In this document: positions 4,523-63,756 of the stretch, one piece after another | How the letters are laid out: the number at the start of each line of letters is the position of its first letter | Numbering within the stretch: the first letter of the stretch is position 1 | Virus record (IMG/VR): IMGVR_UViG_3300020165_000007 | Span: 124,001 to 188,000 of that record | Reading direction: 5' to 3' (one strand) | DNA: 64,000 nt | The notes under the pieces: generated by a model | Told to the model about the DNA's origin: nothing | Database searches by the model: none | The model's input: the letters and a program-made list of their open reading frames with translations, nothing else | Made by a program: the position numbers and the translations under genes

Positions 4523-6544
4523 ATGATAGAATCGGTAGACCCAAACGAAAAAGGAGGAGGAAAAAAGAAAAAAGAAGTTAGTAACTCCAGAACTCCTGTT
4601 CTAGATAATTTTTCTAGAGATTTAATTAAGTTAGCGTCGGAAGGTAAATTAGACCCTGTTGTAGGTCGAGAAGTAGAAATAACAAGGATTGCACAAATTC
4701 TTTCTAGAAGAAAGAAAAACAATCCTATTATTGTTGGTGAACCTGGATGTGGTAAAACTGCGATAGTGGAGGGTTTAGCTATGAGAATTTTTGAGGGAGA
4801 TTGTCCTCAAAATCTGTGTGATAAAAGAATCGTATCTTTAGATATGACTTCTATAGTCGCGGGAACAAAATATAGGGGTCAGTTTGAAGAAAGAATGAAA
4901 GTTATTTTAGATGAACTCCATGATAACCATGATATTGTAGTGTTTATTGATGAGATTCATACTATTATAGGTGCGGGTAATTCCTCAGGTTCATTAGACG
5001 CTTCCAATATATTTAAACCGGCACTAGCGAGGGGTGAAATTCAATGTATCGGAGCAACAACTCTTGATGAATACCGTGAAAATATAGAGAAAGACGGGGC
5101 TTTGGAGAGACGTTTTCAAAAGGTGATGGTTGATGGGTCTACACCTGAAGAAACTATGGTTATCTTAGAGAACTTAAAGTCTAGATATGAAGACCATCAT
5201 AAAGTATCGTATAGTTATGAATCATTAGAGGCTTGTGTTTCTTTATCAGGAAGATATGTTAATGATAGAGAATTCCCTGATAAAGCGATTGATGTTATGG
5301 ATGAGGTTGGGGCTAAGGCACAAATCAATGTTAAATTTCCTGAAATTATAGAGAAACTTAGAGAGGATGCTTTTAATATAAAAGAAAAGAAAATACAAGT
5401 CGTAAAAAGTCAGAGATATGAGGAAGCGGCTCAATTAAGAGATGAAGAGAAAAAGATTCTTTCTCGTCTTGAGTTTGAAAAAGAAAAATTCGAAAGTGAT
5501 AAGGATGAGAAAAGAAAAGAGATTACCGAAGAAATGGTTTATGAGGTAGTTTCTACTATGACTAAAATTCCATTGTCTAAATTAAATGCGGATGACAAAG
5601 AATCTTTATTAAAGTTAGAAAGCAATCTTAACAATTCTGTTATTGGACAAGAAGAGGCAGTCAAAACAATATCTAAGTCTATTAGAAGAAATAGGGTCGG
5701 TATTAAAGACCCTAATAGACCCATCGGTTCGTTTATCTTTTTAGGTTCTACAGGAATTGGTAAGACTCACTTAGCTAAACAATTAGCTAAAGAAATTTTC
5801 GGGGATGAGGAATCTTTGATTAGGGTAGATATGTCAGAATATCAAGAGAAGTACTCAATGAGTAGACTTATAGGTTCTCCTCCAGGGTATGTGGGATATG
5901 ACCAAGGAGGTCAATTAACTGAAGCAGTTAAAAATAAACCATATTCTGTGGTACTATTTGATGAGATTGAAAAGGCGAATAAAGATATTTTTTCAATTCT
6001 ACTTCAAATGATGGATGATGGTCATTTAACAGATTCGTTTGGTCGTAAGATTAATTTTAAAAATTGTCTTATTATAATGACCTCAAACTTAGGGGTTAAG
6101 AAATTACAAGATTTCGGTACCGGTGTTGGGTTTGACACTAAGACTCGTATGTCAAGTAACGAAGAAATGAAAAAGTCCTTACTACAAAAGGAACTTAAAA
6201 ATCACTTTACCCCTGAGTTTTTGAATCGTGTAGATGAAGTTGTAGTTTTTAATCCCCTTAAGGAAAACGAGGTGGAAAAAATTGTTGAAATTGAACTATC
6301 AAAACTTAATCGTAGATTAGTTAAGTTGGGTTATAAGGTATCCATTGACAATAAGGTTAAAAAGTTTTTGTCTGAGGTTGGGTTTGATGAGAAGTATGGA
6401 GCAAGACCTATAAAACGGGCAATTCAAGAAAAAATCGAGGATTTAATTTCAGAAGAAGTATTAAGAGGTAATATCGTAGAAGGTAAACCCTGTAAACTTA
6501 AAATGAAAGGTAAAGAAGAGGTTGTACTAATAAAGGGGAGATAA
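4523..6544 (+). CDS. clpC: ClpC-type AAA+ unfoldase lacking the N-terminal Clp-repeat domain
   Basis: Walker A GEPGCGKT and GSTGIGKT; Walker B VFIDE and LFDEIEK; UVR M-domain QRYEEAAQLRD; GYVGY pore loop; VGF ClpP-docking loop. Confidence 0.92.
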   Translation: MIESVDPNEKGGGKKKKEVSNSRTPVLDNFSRDLIKLASEGKLDPVVGREVEITRIAQILSRRKKNNPIIVGEPGCGKTAIVEGLAMRIFEGDCPQNLCDKRIVSLDMTSIVAGTKYRGQFEERMKVILDELHDNHDIVVFIDEIHTIIGAGNSSGSLDASNIFKPALARGEIQCIGATTLDEYRENIEKDGALERRFQKVMVDGSTPEETMVILENLKSRYEDHHKVSYSYESLEACVSLSGRYVNDREFPDKAIDVMDEVGAKAQINVKFPEIIEKLREDAFNIKEKKIQVVKSQRYEEAAQLRDEEKKILSRLEFEKEKFESDKDEKRKEITEEMVYEVVSTMTKIPLSKLNADDKESLLKLESNLNNSVIGQEEAVKTISKSIRRNRVGIKDPNRPIGSFIFLGSTGIGKTHLAKQLAKEIFGDEESLIRVDMSEYQEKYSMSRLIGSPPGYVGYDQGGQLTEAVKNKPYSVVLFDEIEKANKDIFSILLQMMDDGHLTDSFGRKINFKNCLIIMTSNLGVKKLQDFGTGVGFDTKTRMSSNEEMKKSLLQKELKNHFTPEFLNRVDEVVVFNPLKENEVEKIVEIELSKLNRRLVKLGYKVSIDNKVKKFLSEVGFDEKYGARPIKRAIQEKIEDLISEEVLRGNIVEGKPCKLKMKGKEEVVLIKGR

Positions 6545-11634: not shown

Positions 11635-12021
11635 GGGGGTGTTTTATGGATTTGACCGGTATGGTCAGGTGTAGAGTGCACGTAGTGAGAGGATACCTAT
11701 CACTTTAATCTACGGTTTCAATTTGTAACAGGCGAAACTTTCGCAAAACTTCAGGCTGTCGGTTTACTCCGCACTGAAGAGGTTTACGCTGCCTAAGGCA
11801 TCGTTTACCACGGGTCGGTCAGGACGTTAACCTTGGAACAGAAGTCCGTTGTAGTGGTGGAAAAATGACTGAACCCTAAATCGAGTCATACATCTATTGT
11901 CAGTGGAGGATGTTAAAATTCAACTGAATATTTCGGATTATTAAGAATTAATAATGAACTAAACGTGTAGGACTCTATATTTGAAATATTTGGGACCTGG
12001 GTTCGAGCCCCAGCACCTCCA
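11635..12021 (+). ncRNA. ssrA: tmRNA with tag (A)GETFAKLQAVGLLRTEEVYAA*
   Basis: 5' GGGGGTG...GGATTTGAC; 3' GACCTGGGTTCGAGCCCCAGCACCTCCA; G3-U70 acceptor pair; tag ORF 11731-11796 ends in AA-stop. Confidence 0.93.
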
Positions 12022-12027
12022 CAAATA

Positions 12028-35493: not shown

Positions 35494-37374
35494 ATGGGAA
35501 AAGTTATTGGAATCGATTTGGGTACAACTAATTCATGTGTTTCTGTAGTTGAAGCGGGTACTCCTATCGTAATAGTCAATTCTGAAGGTAGAAGAACAAC
35601 ACCTTCAATAGTTTCATTTAAAGATGGTGACCGCATTGTTGGAGATGCAGCAAAACGTCAATCTATTACAAATCCAGAGAATACAATATACTCTGTTAAA
35701 CGTTTTATCGGTAGTACCTATTCAGAGGTTTCGAAAGAAGTTAAAAAAATGCCATATAAAATATCTAAAGGTGACGGTGGAAAAGTCATAATAAATGTTA
35801 ATGATAGAGATTATGTACCACAAGAAATTTCGGCAATTGTTTTACAAAATTTGAAAAAAACTGCTGAAGATTATTTAGGAGAAAAAGTAACACAAGCCGT
35901 TATTACGGTACCTGCATATTTTAACGATTCACAAAGAAACGCAACAAAAGAAGCGGGTGAAATTGCTGGTCTTGAGGTACTTAGAATAATTAACGAACCT
36001 ACTGCAGCTGCACTATCTTACGGTTTAGATAAAGAAGGAGATAAAAAAGTTGCAGTATATGACTTAGGTGGTGGTACTTTTGACATATCTATTTTAGATA
36101 TGGGTGATGGGGTATTTGAAGTTTTATCCACTAACGGAGACACTCATTTAGGTGGAGATAACTTTGACGAGGTTTTAATTGATTGGATGATAAATAAATT
36201 TAAAGAGGAGTCGGGTATTGACGTATCTAAGGATTCTATGGCGATACAGAGACTTCGTGACGCATCTGAGAAATCTAAAATCGAATTATCATCGTCAAGT
36301 TCAACAGAGATTAATTTACCTTATCTCTCTGCAGGTTCAGAAGGTCCAAAACATTTTGTATGTAAATTAACTAGGTCTGAATTTGAAAGGATGGTAGAGG
36401 ATTTAGTAAAGAAGACCATTTCTCCTTGTCGTAAGGCGGTAAAATCGGCAAATCTAAAAGTAGATGATATTGATGAAGTAATTTTAGTAGGAGGTTCAAC
36501 AAGAATGCCATGTATACAAAATGCCGTTGAAAAGTTCTTTAAGAAGACCCCATCTAAAGGAGTTAACCCTGATGAGGTAGTCGCTATGGGTGCGTCTATA
36601 CAGGGTGGGGTACTTGCTGGTGATGTTAATGACGTTCTTTTATTGGATGTAACTCCTTTATCTTTAGGTATTGAAACAATGGGTGGTATTATGACAAGGT
36701 TAATCGAATCTAACACGACAATACCCACATCAAAATCTCAGGTATTTTCAACGGCGGTAGATAATCAACCCGCTGTTGATATTCATGTATTACAAGGTGA
36801 AAGACCTTTATCTTCAGACAATAGAACGTTAGGTAGATTCCAATTAACAGATTTACCCCCATCACCAAGAGGGATACCTCAAATAGAAGTGACGTTTGAT
36901 ATTGACGCCAACGGTATTATAAATGTAAGTGCAAAAGACAAGGCTACTGATAAGGTGCAAAATATACGTATAGAATCAGGAAATGGTTTGTCAGATGAAG
37001 AAATTGAAAGAATGAAGAAAGACTCTTTAAAGAATGAGGAGTCTGATAATAAAAAGAAATCTGAGATTGAAAAATTAAATGAGGTAGACTCTATGATTTT
37101 TCAAACCGAAAAACAGATAAAAGAATTCGGGGATAAATTAAGTGACACAGACAAAGACAATTTAAATAATAGTTTAAGTAAATTAAAATCCTCATATGAG
37201 GAAAAAGATTTTAATTCTATTGACGAGGATTTAAATTTGTTAAATGAAACATGGTCATCAATATCAACAAAATTATACGAAAATAATCAAGAAGATGATT
37301 CTAATCAATCAGATTCTTTAGATGACGATATAGATGTAAATGATGTGGAATTTGAAGAAGTAAAAACACATTAA
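35494..37374 (+). CDS. dnaK: Hsp70 chaperone DnaK
   Basis: [32 protein letters not shown] and DVEFEEV motifs. Confidence 0.97.
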
Positions 37375-39160: not shown

Positions 39161-39807
39161 TGAAAAAGTATATTGTTCGTTTTTATGGGTGGGAGGAAGA
39201 GATGAATGGATTTAATCTTTCTCAAGAGCAAGCGGATAAGCTTGATGAAGCACTTGAAAGTGGTGAATATGAATCACTTGATAGTATCGGTATGGATATT
39301 GAAGAAATTCTTGGTGTTGAATTCTTTGAAGGTGACGCATTTTCTACGACTAAGGCAAATTACTTAACTGAAAATACATACGTTTATGTTTATGATGAAA
39401 ATGAGAATGAACTATTCTCCTTTGGTTTGGATGAAATGGGTGATATTGAAGACCATAACGAAGAATACGATTATGAAGATGTAACCCAAATTGAGTTCGT
39501 TCCTGAAAAAGGTGGTGTTGAAAATACTCTTTTTGTTTCATCATCAAGTAAAGGAGGTCTTTATGAGTTTCATATTGAAAGTGACGAAGTACCAAAACCT
39601 GAAGATTTTTCTATTGTGACGGGCATGATTGAGATAATAGACTTATATTACGAGTTTATTGATAACGTTTACTTTAAGGGTGAAAAACTTGAAATTGAGG
39701 AATGGTTGGATAATCGTGGCAAAGGAATTTATCTACATTACACCAAACTTCAAGACCTTTATGATTTTTGGGAAAAAAATGGTATTAAAAATCCATACGT
39801 GGATTGA
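39160..39807 (+). CDS. Acidic hypothetical protein
   Basis: 215 aa, start overlaps the upstream stop. Confidence 0.75.
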   Translation: MKKYIVRFYGWEEEMNGFNLSQEQADKLDEALESGEYESLDSIGMDIEEILGVEFFEGDAFSTTKANYLTENTYVYVYDENENELFSFGLDEMGDIEDHNEEYDYEDVTQIEFVPEKGGVENTLFVSSSSKGGLYEFHIESDEVPKPEDFSIVTGMIEIIDLYYEFIDNVYFKGEKLEIEEWLDNRGKGIYLHYTKLQDLYDFWEKNGIKNPYVD

Positions 39808-39841
39808 CAATATTATTTTAATGTTGTATCGTAATACAACA

Positions 39842-39924
39842 GGAGGGATGCCAGAGTGGTTAATGGAGCAGTTTGCTAAACTGTCGTCGGTAACGACGCG
39901 TGGGTTCGAATCCCACTCCCTCCG
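39842..39924 (+). tRNA. tRNA-Ser(GCT)
   Basis: GGAGGGA/TCCCTCC acceptor, loop TTGCTAA, long variable arm, TTCGAAT T-loop. Confidence 0.93.
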
Positions 39925-40097
39925 CAAAAATTAAAAAATGAACTTTAAATATAACATATCAAACAATACAGAACATTTTGAATACACGGTGTATTTGACT
40001 GAAGAAGAATTCAAATCAATTAATTTCGAAAATTACTCAACTACATTTGGTTAAATGAATAATAAGTCATATATTTGTAGAACAAAACAAATAAACA

Positions 40098-40352
40098 ATG
40101 TCAAAAGAAAAACTGTATCGTAGTTCAAATGGTGACTACCTTTACTTGTTCAACTGGAAATGTGGTGGGTTCAATGACGTGTGGGCACCCAATAAGCGTG
40201 AAGCTTATAAGCGTGTAATGAAGGAGCGTAAGGAGTCGGAGGAAAAATACCCTAATCATTCTAAACTTCGTCCTGACTATGATTCAATGCGTCGTTGCAC
40301 TTATAGTGAATATCAGGAACAAAATAAAATGGGTTGGCTACTATCAATCTAA
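40098..40352 (+). CDS. Small hypothetical protein
   Basis: Promoter TTTG 40046 / TATATTTG 40070. Confidence 0.75.
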   Translation: MSKEKLYRSSNGDYLYLFNWKCGGFNDVWAPNKREAYKRVMKERKESEEKYPNHSKLRPDYDSMRRCTYSEYQEQNKMGWLLSI

Positions 40353-40358
40353 TTATAT

Positions 40359-40432
40359 GACTTCGTAGCTCAGTTGGTTAGAGCATCTCACTTTTAATGA
40401 GAGGGTCCTGGGTTCGAGTCCCAGCGGGGTTA
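40359..40432 (+). tRNA. tRNA-Lys(TTT)
   Basis: Cloverleaf; TCTCA-CTTTTAA-TGAGA. Confidence 0.92.
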
Positions 40433-40521
40433 CTTCATCTACCTAAAATTATATCAACATGAAATATTAGCAATAACAAACAAATCAGCTTAATTTAAAA
40501 TTTATAACTAATGTAAACAAA

Positions 40522-40712
40522 GACATTCTCTGAGTAGGGTAAGAATAAAGGAGAGTGTTATAACAAAACTTCTTGCGTGAGTTGGTAAGGTAGCAGCGCA
40601 AGTCTTGTCAGACGCTTACCAAGTCATGGACGAGTGGTGTAAGAAGGTTCCGTTCAAGTTAATGAGAGCGGGTAGACCCAAACAATGGTGGAGTACCAAT
40701 CAAAATCTCCAC
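40522..40712 (+). ncRNA. Candidate structured ncRNA between tRNA-Lys and tRNA-Leu
   Basis: GC-richer spacer with nested helices and no listed ORF. Confidence 0.45.
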
Positions 40713-40718
40713 TGAAAT

Positions 40719-40800
40719 ACCGATGTGGCGTAATTGGTAGCCGCGACAGTCTTAGGAACTGTTGTCGAAAGACGTGTAGGTTCGAGTCCTATCATCGGTA
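40719..40800 (+). tRNA. tRNA-Leu(TAG)
   Basis: ACAGT-CTTAGGA-ACTGT with variable arm. Confidence 0.92.
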
Positions 40801-40807
40801 CTTATAT

Positions 40808-40882
40808 GGTGACTATAGTTCAGTTGGTTAGAACGTCTGATTGTGGTTCAGAAGGTCGTCGGTTCGACTCCGATTAGTCACC
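40808..40882 (+). tRNA. tRNA-His(GTG)
   Basis: Encoded G-1, C73 and loop TTGTGGT. Confidence 0.93.
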
Positions 40883-40890
40883 CATTATAA

Positions 40891-40960
40891 GGTCAGATGT
40901 CCGATTGGAAGGTGTAGGTACGCAATACCTATAACGGTGGTTCGAATCCATCTCTGACCT
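40891..40960 (+). tRNA. tRNA-Cys(GCA) with atypical anticodon loop
   Basis: GGTCAGA/TCTGACC acceptor, U73, TAGGT-ACGCAAT-ACCTA. Confidence 0.82.
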
Positions 40961-40984
40961 CAATTTGAATGAAAACTGTAAATT

Positions 40985-41263
40985 ATGTATGACCCAAAAC
41001 AAGACCCTGCCTTTACAAATAACCCTTATCTAACAGATTATGAATTTAATTATGATTTAATGATGGACCCATGTAGTAACCCAAATCCACCTTCATGGTG
41101 TGAAGACGGTACTGGAGGTCCTTGTAATAACCCTGACCACGGACCTTATTGTGATGGTGTTCACGCAGTACCATGTGATGGTGGAATTATGATGTTATTT
41201 CTTTCTGCAATATTTGGGGTATCATTAATCAAAAAAAGATTTGTTTTATCGAGATACATGTAG
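40985..41263 (+). CDS. Small Cys/Pro-rich protein with PID-CTERM-like sorting tail
   Basis: C-terminal VPCDGG, hydrophobic helix, then KKR. Confidence 0.6.
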   Translation: MYDPKQDPAFTNNPYLTDYEFNYDLMMDPCSNPNPPSWCEDGTGGPCNNPDHGPYCDGVHAVPCDGGIMMLFLSAIFGVSLIKKRFVLSRYM

Positions 41264-41290
41264 TATATTTGTATTCGTTATTTAACATAT

Positions 41291-41364
41291 GCACCCCTAG
41301 CTCAGTTGGATAGAGCATCTGCCTTCTAAGCAGACGGTCACAGGTTCGAATCCTGTGGGGTGTA
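41291..41364 (+). tRNA. tRNA-Arg(TCT)
   Basis: TCTGC-CTTCTAA-GCAGA; own promoter at 41240-41271. Confidence 0.93.
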
Positions 41365-41431
41365 CAAAAAATCTACAATAGATTTGGTAGTTCAAAAAAG
41401 TTACTTATCTTTGTAGTGTTCTTTACAGAAT

Positions 41432-41517
41432 GCCCGGATGGTGGAAGTGGTAGACACGACAGACTTAAAATCTGTTTCGCCGAACGGTGAGTGTGGGTTC
41501 GAGTCCCACTCCGGGTA
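41432..41517 (+). tRNA. tRNA-Leu(TAA)
   Basis: ACAGA-CTTAAAA-TCTGT; promoter at 41383-41413. Confidence 0.93.
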
Positions 41518-41606
41518 CTAAGATAAAGTTCTTTGATATGATGGTATAGTAAATAAGTAAAACTTTCGCTGATGACCCCTCTGCGACAAAAAAGGGGAAC
41601 CAATAC

Positions 41607-41680
41607 GGGGACGTAGCTCAATTGGTTAGAGCATCAAGCTTATATCTTGAAGGTCGGAGGTTCGATTCCTCTCGTCCCTA
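41607..41680 (+). tRNA. tRNA-Ile(TAT)
   Basis: TCAAG-CTTATAT-CTTGA, A73, intact D and T arms. Confidence 0.85.
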
Positions 41681-41698
41681 CTAAAACTATAATAAAAT

Positions 41699-42121
41699 GG
41701 GGGGTCGTCTCTTCGTCCTGATGTGTGGCGACCTCCCGATATAACAAATCGCGTGTGAGGTGAATATGGGGCTTCGGCCCCTACCTCACACACAACAAGC
41801 CGTGTAGTCGTGAAAGGAGTGGTGACTGGAAGCGACCTGAGTACTAGAAAACTCAGACCTGTGTGAAAGCAATCTGTGGGTTGGATGCGCCGACTAAGTA
41901 GTATCTTTTGATACCTTACCCTTATTCTAGTTTGGGTGTCGTTCGGAGAGTAGTGGGTTCGAATCCCATCACATTGGCTAAATTTAAATCACTAAACCCT
42001 CCTACTGACAAGGAGGGGAGGTAAAGATGAACGGGGTATGTCAGAATCCTCAGTAATCGGTGTAACGGTTCGAATCCGTCAGGGGTATTGTCCTTGTAAC
42101 TATCGGAGTATACACCACCTC
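41699..42121 (+). ncRNA. Candidate large structured ncRNA (or two to three adjacent RNAs) with two T-loop hairpins
   Basis: Many helices, a UUCG tetraloop, two GGTTCGAATCC arms without a tRNA cloverleaf, and a kissing-loop complement. Confidence 0.65.
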
Positions 42122-42125
42122 AATT

Positions 42126-42201
42126 GCCACTATAGCTTAGTTGGTAGAGCAGCTGATTTGTAATCAGCAGGTCGGCGGTTCGAGTCCGTCTAGTGGCTCC
42201 A
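42126..42201 (+). tRNA. tRNA-Thr(TGT)
   Basis: GCTGA-TTTGTAA-TCAGC; CCA encoded. Confidence 0.94.
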
Positions 42202-42212
42202 TATAAAAAAGA

Positions 42213-42292
42213 GGGGGTATCGCATAGTGGCAATTGCGGCTGACTGTAAATCAGCTCCTTCGGGTTCGGAGGTTCGAGTCCTTCTACCCCCA
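42213..42292 (+). tRNA. tRNA-Tyr(GTA)
   Basis: GCTGA-CTGTAAA-TCAGC with variable arm. Confidence 0.93.
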
Positions 42293-42295
42293 CAT

Positions 42296-42369
42296 TCTCC
42301 CTTAGCTCAGTTGGTTAGAGCATCTGACTGTTAATCAGAGGGTCCTTGGTTCGAGCCCAAGAGGGAGAG
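42296..42369 (+). tRNA. tRNA-Asn(GTT)
   Basis: TCTGA-CTGTTAA-TCAGA, G73. Confidence 0.93.
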
Positions 42370-42448
42370 CGGCGCCTGAAGACTGAGAGAAGGGGAGTGA
42401 CTATTAATTTAGTCCTCCTCTTTTTGTATTTATAAATAAAATAATAAA

Positions 42449-43384
42449 ATGAAAATAGGATTATGGCACGAAGGGCTTGTAGGGGACGACCTACAAACCA
42501 ATGAATCAAGTTTTAGTACATATGCAAGTGAGTATGTTAAATTTGTTACTGACAATAATATAGACAGGGCATTTTTTATATTACATGACCCCAATAGTAA
42601 AGACGGTAGATACCTTAAAAACGGATGGTTTGAAAAATATTGGTTAAATAAACTACCTAAAAATTGTGAGGTAGGACTTTTAATTGATACCGAACCTGGT
42701 TCTTCATGGGTAAACTCCAACCCTATATTAACTTCAGGTGATAGTATGGAAATTGCATTTCAATATATATCAACATTAAATAACACTTCGGGTAATAAAC
42801 AAATAACGTGCGTGTCTTTTGATTCTGAGGATGTATCGGGTTCAGGTAAGTGGGGAGATGGATATTATAGTGTGGACGGAATTAAATGGATTAACAATAT
42901 GGTGGGTAAGTATATTACTAACCCAAACTTTGATTGGGGGTTTGCTGGTCAATCTAACGACCCTAACAAACTTAACAACTACAGGGAAGTATATTGGGTT
43001 GGTGAGTTACTAAATTGTGGTTGTACTGGAATTTTAGCTAAAAACGATAGTCTTAAATGTCAGTGTCCGAATACGCCTTACTGTAAAAATAAAAACGATA
43101 TAAACGGAATTTTAAATACTCCGATAGGTGATTACCTAAAAAAACCTGAATTAACTGGTTCTACAATATGGACTATGTTTTCAGTAGAAAGTACATCTAA
43201 AACTGATTGTGTATCATTACCTTACGCTAGTAACTCTAAACACCCGTGTGGTATTATGGACGCTTTTGGTGTGTGGGATAAATCGGACTTTATGTCTTTT
43301 TTAAATGAGGTTGAGTTAAAATATGGAATTAAACAAGTTATGATTTATGAGTGGCAATTCATTCCGAAAAAGTGGTTAATATAA
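42449..43384 (+). CDS. Hypothetical Cys/Trp-rich protein, possibly glycoside-hydrolase-like
   Basis: 311 aa; VSFDSED resembles a GH18-like DxE; function weakly supported. Confidence 0.55.
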   Translation: MKIGLWHEGLVGDDLQTNESSFSTYASEYVKFVTDNNIDRAFFILHDPNSKDGRYLKNGWFEKYWLNKLPKNCEVGLLIDTEPGSSWVNSNPILTSGDSMEIAFQYISTLNNTSGNKQITCVSFDSEDVSGSGKWGDGYYSVDGIKWINNMVGKYITNPNFDWGFAGQSNDPNKLNNYREVYWVGELLNCGCTGILAKNDSLKCQCPNTPYCKNKNDINGILNTPIGDYLKKPELTGSTIWTMFSVESTSKTDCVSLPYASNSKHPCGIMDAFGVWDKSDFMSFLNEVELKYGIKQVMIYEWQFIPKKWLI

Positions 43385-44218: not shown

Positions 44219-46234
44219 TTAGTTAAAGAACTCTTTCTTAATTTGATAATTACCATTAGTGTATTTTATTTTCTTAATATAAATTCCTGATGAGGTTATC
44301 TCACTTAAATTAATCTTAGCACCGTAGATATTATAGTATTCTATATTTTCTACGGTGTTTTGATTTTCAGGAATTTGTATTCCTTTAGAATTAATAATTT
44401 GTTTAACCGACTCAGGGATTTCAGTTTCTAACATCATACCATTCTCACACTGTAGACCAAATACGGAAATAAAGTCTAATATATCGTCAACACCAATAAT
44501 ACTATCCTGATTAAAATCTAACGGACTACATTCTACAGTTAATCCAAAGTTTTGTAGTAAAGGAAATAAGTCAGAGGTACCTACAATACCATCTTCATCT
44601 AAATCCCAAGGACAATCACCTAATGGTGGACATACATCAACAGGAGGACCCACATAAAAAGGTAATATCTCTTCATCTCCCCAATTTCCTGTTACTGTGT
44701 TTAGAGTGTCATTACCATTTATAATAGAAGTCGGACCCCCACAAGGGTAAAACATACCATTTCCAAATAAATCTTCTAAAACTAAAACATAATTTCCTTC
44801 TTCTAAACAATATGTGTTAGTTTCAACCTCACATGCGTATACTTCATTATCATAGTAACCCCCCTCATCAATTAATTCCTCAGTATCTGAGTTGTATAGA
44901 CTCCATTCGAATCCATAAGGTAAAGCATCAAATTCTATAGTAATGTCTATAAAAGTACCTTCATAATTGTTAATTTGAAGGGTATTAGTATTATTATCTT
45001 CATATATGTCACCTAATACTTCTACATTAACCTCTATATCTGAGATACCGTATTCTATATTGATATTAGGTATTATTATAACTTCACTTTCAGCAAAACC
45101 TAAATTTCCTACCCAATTAATAGAACTACTTTCACCATTTAGAGAATAATTAATAGTGGCTTCAGTTAATGTATCACCAAAACTCTGTAAGTTGAAAATT
45201 ATATCCTTTGTGGTTGAACATCCCAAATTAGGAACTGATAACCCATTAATAGAAACGTCTATCCCCCCAACGGCACCACATGCTAAATTATTATCCACAA
45301 CTCCAGGTCTAAAAGTTTCTAATTGGGATAACATTCTTAAAGTCTGTCCTTGGGTAAAACTTTCCATACAATTATCAGTAGTATAATCCATAAAATTCTC
45401 TATTAAATCACCACCACAAGCACCTCCATTTAAGGGACATCCAATGTTTCCTGTAGTGACAGGTGTATCACATACTTTATCCCCTTGTGTTTCACAGTTA
45501 GTGTTGGTAGGGGTACATGTACTTGTTTGATTAAATGTGTGAAATAACCCACAATAGTGTCCCATTTCATGAACCAGAGTTCTATTTAACCCATAACTAC
45601 CTACATTAGTAATTCCAAAAGCGTTAGTCCCCATAAATACCCCATAATTAGTTGGGGGTAAATAAGCGAACCCTAACGGACTACCAAAAGGCGCTATAAA
45701 AACATTACAATAATTATTTCTATCATATCCAATTTGATTGGATACTTGAATGTGGTTATTGTAAAAAGCCGTAGCGTCCCACTCCTCTATATTTAAATTA
45801 TCCCAATCATAATATCTAATACCTTCAATAGGTTCTCCATCAGTAGAAGCATTTGCTATACAAAAATTTATCTGTGTGTTTGCAGTAGGTACATCACTAA
45901 ATTCTCCCGCAAAATTATCATTTAAATTATCAAAAGCTTCTTGTATAAATTCCACAGGTAAATGGTAGTCAGTTCCGTAGGGTTCACCAAAATGAATTAC
46001 ATGAACTATTACAGGAATTGTAATAGGTAAATCTGATTTGTTTGAAATTCTTATCGTCTCTTCTGATTTTTTCGCTATAGATTCAAGTTTTTGGTAGCTC
46101 CTTTTAAATTTAGGGTCTTTTAGTTGCTGTTCAAATAATATATCAGTACCACATCTCGTGGGTTCCTGAGAAAATATTATGTTATTAAATAAACTAAATA
46201 AAAATACTAAAATTAAAGGTCTTAAAAATGTCAT
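44219..46234 (-). CDS. Secreted M43 (pappalysin/ulilysin-type) zinc metalloprotease with dockerin-like repeats and a CTD-like tail
   Basis: Signal peptide; RCGT cysteine switch; HEMGHYCGLFHTF; Met-turn NFMDY; DLDEDGIVGTSD/DFNQDSIIGVDD; YYNIYGAKI...GIYIKK tail. Confidence 0.88.
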   Translation of the reverse strand: MTFLRPLILVFLFSLFNNIIFSQEPTRCGTDILFEQQLKDPKFKRSYQKLESIAKKSEETIRISNKSDLPITIPVIVHVIHFGEPYGTDYHLPVEFIQEAFDNLNDNFAGEFSDVPTANTQINFCIANASTDGEPIEGIRYYDWDNLNIEEWDATAFYNNHIQVSNQIGYDRNNYCNVFIAPFGSPLGFAYLPPTNYGVFMGTNAFGITNVGSYGLNRTLVHEMGHYCGLFHTFNQTSTCTPTNTNCETQGDKVCDTPVTTGNIGCPLNGGACGGDLIENFMDYTTDNCMESFTQGQTLRMLSQLETFRPGVVDNNLACGAVGGIDVSINGLSVPNLGCSTTKDIIFNLQSFGDTLTEATINYSLNGESSSINWVGNLGFAESEVIIIPNINIEYGISDIEVNVEVLGDIYEDNNTNTLQINNYEGTFIDITIEFDALPYGFEWSLYNSDTEELIDEGGYYDNEVYACEVETNTYCLEEGNYVLVLEDLFGNGMFYPCGGPTSIINGNDTLNTVTGNWGDEEILPFYVGPPVDVCPPLGDCPWDLDEDGIVGTSDLFPLLQNFGLTVECSPLDFNQDSIIGVDDILDFISVFGLQCENGMMLETEIPESVKQIINSKGIQIPENQNTVENIEYYNIYGAKINLSEITSSGIYIKKIKYTNGNYQIKKEFFN

Positions 46235-63063: not shown

Positions 63064-63756
63064 TTATGCCTTCATCATCGAGGATGGAAAATCGGGTTTA
63101 GATGGAAAATCAGGTTTGTTAATCTTATCTCTTGGTGGTACTTTACCTCCTTCAAAACATTGTCCTATACCAACACATTGTAGCAAACCTTTTATTTTAT
63201 CTTCATCAATACAGAAATCCTCTTTTAGTCCTCCCATAAACTTAGATATACATCCTTGTACTTTCTCACAGTCCACATTGATACCACCGTCTTTAACTGG
63301 TACAGTACCTATTTGACCACCACCTTTACACTTATCACAAATTTCTTTAGGGATACAACCTAATTCACATAATTTACCTGTAGTTTCAGGTCCGATACCA
63401 CCGTCAACTTTAAGTCCATTTTTTCCTTGAAATACTTCAACAACATCCTTAGTCATACTTCCAAAGATACCATCAACAACTAATGGTTGTAGAGGTTCGA
63501 TACCACATGCGTTTAACGCTTCTTGAAATAACTTAACCAACTCACCTTTAGCACCTCTCTTAAGTTGTCCTTTACCGACCAATACTTGACAAAATTCGTC
63601 AGCAATTGGTAAGTATTTTTTTACAGGTACTTCTTTTTTTGGTGGAGCGTCGGTCATTGGTGGAGATACGACTTTCTCTTGTTCATTTAATAAACCCTTA
63701 TATAGACTCTGTATACTCAGTTTTTCATTTTCGGATAGTATGATTCTTTTTCCCAT
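63064..63756 (-). CDS. Peptidoglycan-binding-domain protein with leader
   Basis: LKRGAKGELVKLFQEAL...VDGIFG...FQGKNGLKVDGGIGPET; leader MGKRIILSENEK...LLNEQ. Confidence 0.8.
   Translation of the reverse strand: MGKRIILSENEKLSIQSLYKGLLNEQEKVVSPPMTDAPPKKEVPVKKYLPIADEFCQVLVGKGQLKRGAKGELVKLFQEALNACGIEPLQPLVVDGIFGSMTKDVVEVFQGKNGLKVDGGIGPETTGKLCELGCIPKEICDKCKGGGQIGTVPVKDGGINVDCEKVQGCISKFMGGLKEDFCIDEDKIKGLLQCVGIGQCFEGGKVPPRDKINKPDFPSKPDFPSSMMKA

Follow-up and report, generated by a model that had tools for sequence, protein, structure and literature searches.

Phage tRNA arrays are usually annotated as a series of tRNAs with junk spacers in between. In the array described here one such spacer, the 444 bases between tRNA-Ile(UAU) and tRNA-Thr(UGU), holds conserved folded RNAs absent from Rfam, and the question raised by this locus is what those RNAs are and what a phage might gain from them. 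An earlier note, made from the letters of the sequence, had described one ornate structured RNA with two T-loop arms, and had offered three readings of it: a divergent member of the GOLLD and ROOL RNAs, a new class, or tRNA-mimic decoys.

The phage and its tRNA array

The window, that is the whole stretch of 64,000 bases analysed here, corresponds to positions 124001-188000 of a 270,383-base IMG/VR virus contig. The contig is that of a marine or estuarine jumbo phage with a GC content of 33%, and near-identical DNA is present in seawater, estuary and marine-sediment metagenomes. Its genetic code is standard: ORFs of at least 150 aa cover 84.7% of the contig, and an alternative code was rejected, as reading through TAG (85.6%) or TGA (86.1%) adds about one point of coverage. 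Amongst the proteins encoded in the window are a DnaK-like chaperone, which shares 57-64% identity with its counterparts in huge phages and bacteria, as well as a Lon-like ATP-dependent protease and an M43 metallopeptidase (ORFs at 35494-37374, 4523-6544 and 44219-46234).

Eleven tRNA genes form a single array at 39842-42370; two more lie further downstream, and the window also contains a tmRNA gene. The tRNAs of the array that flank the region gave 11 matches to RF00005 at 47-74 bits; the tRNA at 40891-40960 (+) was found by Rfam only (47 bits), is missed by ARAGORN and may be non-canonical or degenerate. A promoter-like site (TTGACA-17-TATCGT, 10/12) is located at 39804-39832 (+), 10 bases 5' of the first tRNA of the array, and a search for such a site inside the Ile-Thr gap found none. 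Two small ORFs within the array, at 40098-40352 and 40985-41263 (+), would encode 84 and 92 aa and have no Pfam match. The tmRNA, at 11635-12024 (+), is full-length (Rfam 97 bits, E 1e-36) although not called by ARAGORN, and the phage genome bearing it lacks an SmpB gene.

The structured part of the Ile-Thr gap spans about 420 nt and has a GC content of 40-56%, compared with 33% for the genome. Elsewhere in the array the spacers are far plainer. The window contains 16 sites with the T-loop consensus GGTTCGANNCC, against 0.13 expected by chance; 13 of these are in tRNA or tmRNA genes, two are in the Ile-Thr gap and one, at 63494, was discarded as it falls inside an ORF. When positions 39700-42500 were compared with all 4227 Rfam families using cmscan, nothing was found in the region at gathering scores or at E<=10, the GOLLD, ROOL, tRNA and group I intron models included, and the suggestion of a new class thus fits.

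Relatives of the region

With positions 41600-42200 as the query, blastn against cultured phages returned matches to the flanking tRNAs only. IMG/VR contained three identical contigs and one diverged contig, L005, from which, together with the window, a covariance model (R1) was built. A scan of metagenomes with a 22-base pattern taken from the most conserved hairpin produced 40 loci, all of them matched by R1; the model scores 150-228 bits in 42 loci, which represent 27 distinct versions of Unit 1, the part of the region by which the set was collected.

Searches beyond this set were negative within their scope. Distant phage relatives, on contigs found via two proteins, carry no copy, and the Unit 2 pattern was found in viral contigs of this phage only. 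The extra matches of the 16-mer GATGCGCCGACTAAGT in viral contigs proved to be chance occurrences in coding DNA, and, for the 3' block pattern in genome_contigs, 86 of the matches listed were examined in their context and proved to be chance or ordinary tRNAs; of 132 loci of that pattern, again among the matches listed, 100 were scored with R1 and none exceeded 17 bits. Bacterial and archaeal genomes yielded no true relative among the matches listed. To date the RNA family has been seen in a single phage lineage.

Four modules in the Ile-Thr gap

The pairings pointed out in the earlier note are indeed present: the 11-bp helix 41699-709/41727-737; GTGTGAGGT/ACCTCACAC around GGGGC-TTCG-GCCCC (41754-41789); AGCC (41798) and GGCT (41976-79), which bracket 182 nt (its unit of about 180 nt); within that unit, the hairpin CTGAGT/ACTCAG (41837-56) and the T-arm GTGGG-TTCGAAT-CCCAT (41953-69); the hairpin CCCTCCT/AGGAGGG at 41997-42017, the loop of which, ACTGACA, complements TGTCAG at 42039-44; and GAGGT/ACCTC (42018-22/42117-21) with GGTGT/ACACC (42059-63/42112-16), enclosing ACGG-TTCGAAT-CCGT (42065-79). 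The Ile-Thr gap is, however, made up of four separate conserved folded non-coding RNA modules and not of one ornate RNA, since HP2 and Unit 2 are each missing from some variants and have been lost independently of each other. The modules and the neighbouring genes are:

41607-41681 (+), tRNA-Ile(UAU), upstream neighbour of Unit 1 in all variants with an upstream flank
41699-41737 (+), HP1, an 11-bp hairpin with a conserved 17-nt loop
41754-41789 (+), HP2, an optional long hairpin capped by GGGGC-UUCG-GCCCC
41798-41979 (+), Unit 1, a tRNA-like structured RNA of 182 bases
41997-42121 (+), Unit 2, optional; its core (42018-42121) exists in two versions
42126-42201 (+), tRNA-Thr(UGU), next tRNA downstream in all but one variant with a downstream flank

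Wherever the flank in question is present among the 42 loci, Unit 1 lies downstream of tRNA-Ile(UAU) and is followed by tRNA-Thr(UGU) in all but L005, where tRNA-Gly takes that place. The claim that the RNA is non-coding was borne out, as one-base indels in loops among the variants exclude coding and the region is free of overlapping ORFs of more than 55 aa. For the entire gap (441 nt) the z of the fold energy is only -2.0, so the case rests on comparative evidence and not on thermodynamics. The homologues asked for by the earlier note could be collected as 27 variants, across which helices are kept via compensatory changes in all four modules, in support of folding. Much of this covariation traces to a few lineages, chiefly L005 and the split between types A and B of Unit 2, and all-against-all covariation was not used as evidence because it is swamped by clade structure.

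HP1 was present in all 22 distinct upstream spacers recovered, with a fold z of -3.7 (0/200 shuffles as good) and one stem pair that is U.G, C-G or A-U among the variants. HP2 (fold z -5.9) is missing from five of these 22 spacers (L005, L033, L049, L030 and L055), and where present shows a compensatory change of GGGGC/GCCCC to GGGAC/GTCCC, i.e., G-C to A-U. Neither hairpin is followed by a U-tract and so neither looks like a terminator.

Insertions and remnants are also seen at these loci. An HNH-type ORF (CPNCH), probably a homing endonuclease, lies between Unit 1 and tRNA-Thr in L048 (186-612) and also in L033. A 150-base insertion between HP1 and HP2 in L056 (436-699) has inverted-repeat ends which resemble the base of HP1 (GGGG.../...CCTCCC), thus suggesting a mobile or duplicating hairpin element. 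L005 carries at 5790-5840 a remnant of tRNA-Asn in which an internal deletion joins the D-loop to the T-loop, an indication that tRNA genes decay in these arrays.

Parts of Unit 1

Unit 1 is present as a single copy in the phage genome and consists of the following elements:

41807-41836 (+), H2, a D-arm-like hairpin GUCGU/GCGAC with a 20-nt loop containing an invariant GG
41837-41856 (+), H4, a hairpin whose stem has 6 bp and whose 8-nt loop, ACUAGAAA, is complementary to that of H10
41858-41977 (+), inner cloverleaf of the second alternative fold, 120 bases; CC and GUGUGA pair with UCACAU and GG
41869-41888 (+), V2, a D-arm-like hairpin with a hypervariable loop of 9-10 nt (41875-41883) in which GG is always kept
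41890-41946 (+), V3, in which CCGA/UCGG closes a Y-shaped insert of H9 and H10
41901-14 (+), H9, a small hairpin inside V3 with compensatory changes
41917-38 (+), H10, a small hairpin inside V3 with the loop UUAUUCUAGUUU and compensatory changes
41953-41969 (+), T hairpin, GGG/CCC and flanking pairs, loop UUCGAAU

The T arm is that expected of a tRNA (U54 U55 C56 R57 A58): UUCGA, at T-loop positions 54-58, is invariant in the 27 variants, and positions 59 and 60 vary, as they do in tRNAs. Its stem has 3-5 bp, with a U.U in 19 of the 27. H2 is paired in 100% of cells and includes a U.G to U-A change. A 7-nt anticodon loop with U33 on a 5-bp stem is absent; in its place stand either the 8-nt loop ACUAGAAA or, in V3, a 48-nt Y-shaped insert of two hairpins, and Unit 1 therefore cannot decode. 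The earlier statement that there is neither D-arm nor anticodon cloverleaf goes too far, as Unit 1 has D-arm-like hairpins and cloverleaf-like four-way junctions. By its T-loop, acceptor-like helix and D-arm-like hairpins, Unit 1 most likely derives from a tRNA or mimics one.

A feature newly seen here, absent from the earlier note, is that the loops of H4 and H10 form a perfect 7-base complement (41843-49 with 41925-31), which 1.4% of composition-preserving shuffles match. The core of the H10 loop, CUAGU, is invariant, the invariance of H4 is partly forced by the metagenome search pattern, and the loop position after ACUAG varies between A, G and U. Between the window and L005, Unit 1 differs at 31/183 positions, a divergence close to that of third codon positions in a neighbouring gene (identity 0.78-0.81), and all 16 of the changes in paired columns keep the pair; such compatibility at nearly the divergence of third codon positions implies selection on structure and not on sequence.

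The highest mutual information in the Unit 1 alignment links the V2 hypervariable loop (41875-41883) with T-loop position 59 (41963), the combinations being C-G in 11 variants, U-A in 4, A-U in 4 and others in 8. Either a tertiary contact or mere common descent could account for it, and it should be regarded as a lead only. Taken with the GG kept in that loop, the sequences hint, likewise as a lead only, that an elbow of D-loop and T-loop may be under diversifying pressure.

A G.U at the third position of the inner acceptor-like helix (41861/41974), seen in 25/26 variants, may recall the alanine identity pair of tRNA-Ala and tmRNA. Two candidate features were dropped. H6 (CCCA with an upstream TGGG), from the first two-sequence fold, fails in 12/27 variants, its upstream strand being the hypervariable hairpin loop, and a tmRNA-like tag frame from GCA at 41869 is ruled out by one-base indels.

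Two alternative cloverleaves

The 3' tail of Unit 1, UCACAUUGGCU, has two possible pairing partners. Joined to the 5' end, AGCCGUGU, it forms an outer cloverleaf that has tRNA-like spacing, an 8-base 'anticodon' loop and a variable arm of about 100 bases. With CCUGUGUGA, an internal copy of the 5'-end motif, it forms the inner cloverleaf, which closes V2, V3 and the T hairpin and in which the H9/H10 insert replaces the anticodon loop. Pairing was counted over 26 variants on a MAFFT alignment made without reference to any structure. The inner fold has 99.6% of 1170 cells paired and seven pairs with compensatory changes, the covariation of H5 coming from a single sequence (L005); the outer fold has 96.0% of cells paired and five compensatory pairs, its second pair being broken in 9/26 variants. 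For neither fold does any of 500 shuffles come up to these figures, and slid controls stand at 27-48%.

The consensus energies differ little, at -86.9 kcal/mol unconstrained (resembling the outer fold) vs -83.3 kcal/mol with the inner fold enforced. Set beside the regular tRNA arrangement, a 7-bp acceptor stem stacked on a T stem of 5 bp, each of the two acceptor-like helices is interrupted by either a bulge or a U.U mismatch. Thermodynamic folding of the large arm gives different predictions from one variant to another, and shuffled sequences fold as well as the inner domain does (z -0.7). Overall the inner cloverleaf is slightly favoured over the outer, and a switch between both may be possible.

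Unit 2

41997-42017 (+), Pa, a 7-bp hairpin with the invariant loop ACUGACA
42018-22/42117-21 (+), P1, helix
42026-28/42056-58 (+), P1b, helix
42033-50 (+), Pb, a hairpin with invariant UGUCAG in its loop and a covarying stem
42059-63/42112-16 (+), P2, helix
42065-79 (+), Pc, the 'T-arm', a type A hairpin
42080-96 (+), Pd, hairpin

The kissing-loop pair suggested earlier is plausible, since both loops are invariant in 17 variants whilst their stems covary (in Pa, A-U/C-G/U.G and U-A/C-G); the Pa and Pb loops are 6-base complements (42005-10 with 42039-44), and 0.17% of shuffles do as well. P1, P1b, Pb and P2 are kept by both divergent versions of the unit through double changes. As the single A/B split supplies most of the covariation, it represents few independent events; even so, that all four helices should stay complementary by accident is unlikely. 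In type B a GNRA-like hairpin, CUGAGA-GCGAU-UCUCAG, replaces Pc and another hairpin replaces Pd. The second of the two T-loop arms listed in the earlier note is thus a replaceable cap and not a defining feature, and the swap of a T-loop hairpin for a GNRA-like one is a neat case of interchangeable RNA tertiary modules. Unit 2 is missing in seven loci, and there Unit 1 ends 14-15 nt before tRNA-Thr.

At 42011-42056 a strong Shine-Dalgarno-like run (AAGGAGGGGAGGU) precedes an ORF of nine codons that begins with the ATG at 42027; the ORF is probably not coding, because its start is ACG in type B.

Expression

Contigs over the Ile-Thr gap were found in four metatranscriptome runs. These are assembled contigs of RNA libraries, which speak for presence and linkage and not for ends or strand, and in which DNA carry-over is possible. 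One run has a 271-nt contig (41761-42031) at a depth of 21, with 0 on the downstream ORF, and in two runs the depth is 18-45 over Unit 1 vs 5-18 on the ORF. Contigs at 41656-41808 join tRNA-Ile, HP1, HP2 and Unit 1, and one contig has the short junction of Unit 1 to tRNA-Thr that is typical of loci without Unit 2. On balance we lean towards the view, a little better than even in our estimation, that the modules are co-transcribed with the tRNAs and that Unit 1, as a mimic of tRNA, owes its maturation to the enzymes that process tRNAs.

Other explanations

The modules might instead be cis-acting structures in the spacers of a polycistronic tRNA precursor which steer RNase E, III or P and exonucleases or hold them off, or order the release of tRNAs, and have no function as free RNAs. 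Their position between tRNA genes of one operon suits this explanation, as do HP1 directly after tRNA-Ile, the end of Unit 2 only 4 nt before tRNA-Thr, the optional nature of the modules with a spacing to tRNA-Thr that shrinks to 14-15 nt, and RNA contigs which cross module borders. However, simple processing hairpins need neither mutually complementary invariant loops nor a conserved T-loop, nor a nearly invariant 60-nt core with branched junctions, and the same array manages with much simpler spacers elsewhere; we thus consider it possible but rather doubtful. That the units bearing T-loops are functionless, decaying tRNA genes or recombination scars is disfavoured and appears improbable. 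The tRNA-Asn of L005 with its internal deletion shows that tRNAs do decay here, homing-endonuclease-like ORFs and hairpin insertions land in the gap, and the divergence of Unit 1 between the window and L005 is close to that of third codon positions; against this, none of the 16 paired-column changes between the two breaks a pair, 99.6% of cells are paired over 26 variants, invariant loops stand beside covarying stems, hairpins are swapped for other hairpins at the same sites, and Unit 1 is retained at one fixed site in 42/42 loci.

Two further explanations are each very unlikely. One would treat the whole 420 nt as a single large ornate RNA of the GOLLD/ROOL type, multimeric via kissing loops. 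GOLLD and ROOL RNAs do lie near phage tRNA islands and form cages (PMC12286853), and the gap offers two loop-loop complements, one of them on the palindrome CUAG, but natural variants lose HP2 and Unit 2 independently, the region of about 420 nt is around half the size of ROOL or GOLLD (approximately 580-800 nt or more), and the lack of any match to a GOLLD or ROOL covariance model at E<=10 disposes of the divergent member proposed earlier. The other holds Unit 1 to be a decoding tRNA from which an intron or insertion is removed, or a tRNA whose 8-nt anticodon loop serves in suppression or frameshifting. Its 5' part has a spacing that would be appropriate (7-nt acceptor strand, UA, 4-5-bp D stem, 1 nt, 5-6-bp stem), the 8-nt loop includes CUA and UAG, and ARAGORN can be forced to an intron-containing call at relaxed thresholds; yet ARAGORN finds no tRNA in the region at default thresholds with or without introns, in agreement with the earlier non-tRNA claim, the relaxed call uses a helix missing from other variants, there is no match to a tRNA or group I intron model, the position after ACUAG varies as noted, and the genome uses the standard code. 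The relaxed ARAGORN calls (Val, Ser and Pro) were rejected, their helices not being conserved. Scarcely credible, and disfavoured, is a YrlA-type, Y-RNA-like tRNA mimic working with Ro60/Rsr: YrlA RNAs occur in phages and mimic the D and T arms of tRNA, and one of them is an RNase P substrate to which CCA is added (PMC4201824), but the Rfam YrlA model reaches only E 1.6 and does so on true tRNAs outside the region, there is no TROVE/Ro60 gene in the phage genome, and YrlA ends on the anticodon side where Unit 1 ends on the acceptor side.

A proposed tRNA mimic within the tRNA operon

Returning to the tRNA mimic matured within the operon, the modules of the Ile-Thr gap would be transcribed as part of the phage tRNA operon, with HP1, HP2 and Unit 2 as accessory folded modules, Unit 2 presumably being a compact fold locked by its 6-bp loop-loop contact. 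RNase P and the CCA-adding enzyme both recognise the stack of acceptor and T arm. From this recognition and the YrlA precedent (PMC4201824) we infer both the maturation of Unit 1 and its role as a mimic: the likeness to acceptor and T arm may let host RNase P, 3' trimming, CCA addition and T-loop modification excise and stabilise it, and the mature RNA might then bind or titrate some tRNA-recognising factor. The mimic part of the earlier 'tRNA-mimic decoys' thus fits Unit 1, and 'decoy' goes a step further than the data. Amongst the genes of the 270-kb phage genome no obvious Ro60, CCA-adding enzyme, RtcB or SmpB was seen, so any partner is probably a host factor.

A bolder extension, to which we attach a low probability, would make Unit 1 a bistable tRNA mimic whose tail switches between the cloverleaves and whose hypervariable, D-loop-like loop is driven to diversify by selection, in an arms race against some host defence or enzyme that binds tRNA, the palindromic CUAG loops and the kissing loops of Unit 2 perhaps allowing defined RNA-RNA assemblies to form. 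The region would then be a modular equivalent, on a small scale, of the RNA cages beside other phage tRNA islands. Should Unit 1 be a stable tRNA mimic, it would join the Y RNAs as a second family of tRNA look-alikes carried by phages, and offer a tractable case in which to ask what phages gain from mimicry, e.g., the titration of host tRNA-targeting defences or enzymes.

Comparison with known systems

The region is not a GOLLD, ROOL, tmRNA, Y RNA, group I intron or decoding tRNA. With GOLLD and ROOL it shares the character of an elaborate phage RNA beside a tRNA island with loop-mediated contacts, but here there are separable modules, half the size or less, with no model match. The tRNA-like domain of tmRNA (RF00023) also has an acceptor stem and T arm with a large insert in place of the anticodon arm; Unit 1, however, lacks a conserved reading frame (its loops have indels) and a series of pseudoknots. 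The tmRNA models (RF00023 / RF04321) gave only a 15-nt T-loop match in the region, at 10.9 bits vs a gathering score of 47, and ARAGORN -m called no tmRNA there. The tRNA model RF00005 has no match in 41699-42121 at E<=10, and the same is true of the group I intron model on the region, where the insert is some 50-100 nt. Allo-tRNAs, which have 8/4 or 9/3 acceptor/T branches, are found in phage tRNA clusters, and some have been proposed to be regulatory RNAs (PMC5389517). They resemble the inner cloverleaf with its acceptor-like helix of 8-9 pairs and 4-bp T stem, but keep a normal anticodon arm and decode, whereas Unit 1 is without a 7-nt anticodon loop.

The YrlA RNAs (RF02553) are likewise non-decoding RNAs with tRNA-like D and T arms, some of them phage-encoded; the present region differs in topology and is without a model match, a Ro60 gene or a Ro60-binding helix (RF02553 gave only the E 1.6 matches on true tRNAs, and PF05731 is missing from the 270-kb genome). 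In phage T4 the small stable RNAs C and D (species 1 and 2) are non-tRNA RNAs which lie within the tRNA cluster and are cut from the same precursors as the tRNAs. The likeness, drawn here by description only, is that of non-tRNA RNAs encoded inside a phage tRNA cluster; the present units differ in being larger and branched, with loop-loop complements, and in their confinement to a marine jumbo-phage lineage. The region belongs among the structured or tRNA-like RNAs associated with phage tRNA arrays and matches no described RNA family, and by analogy its way of working would appear closest to that of the small stable RNAs from the tRNA cluster of T4 and of the tRNA-mimicking Y RNAs.
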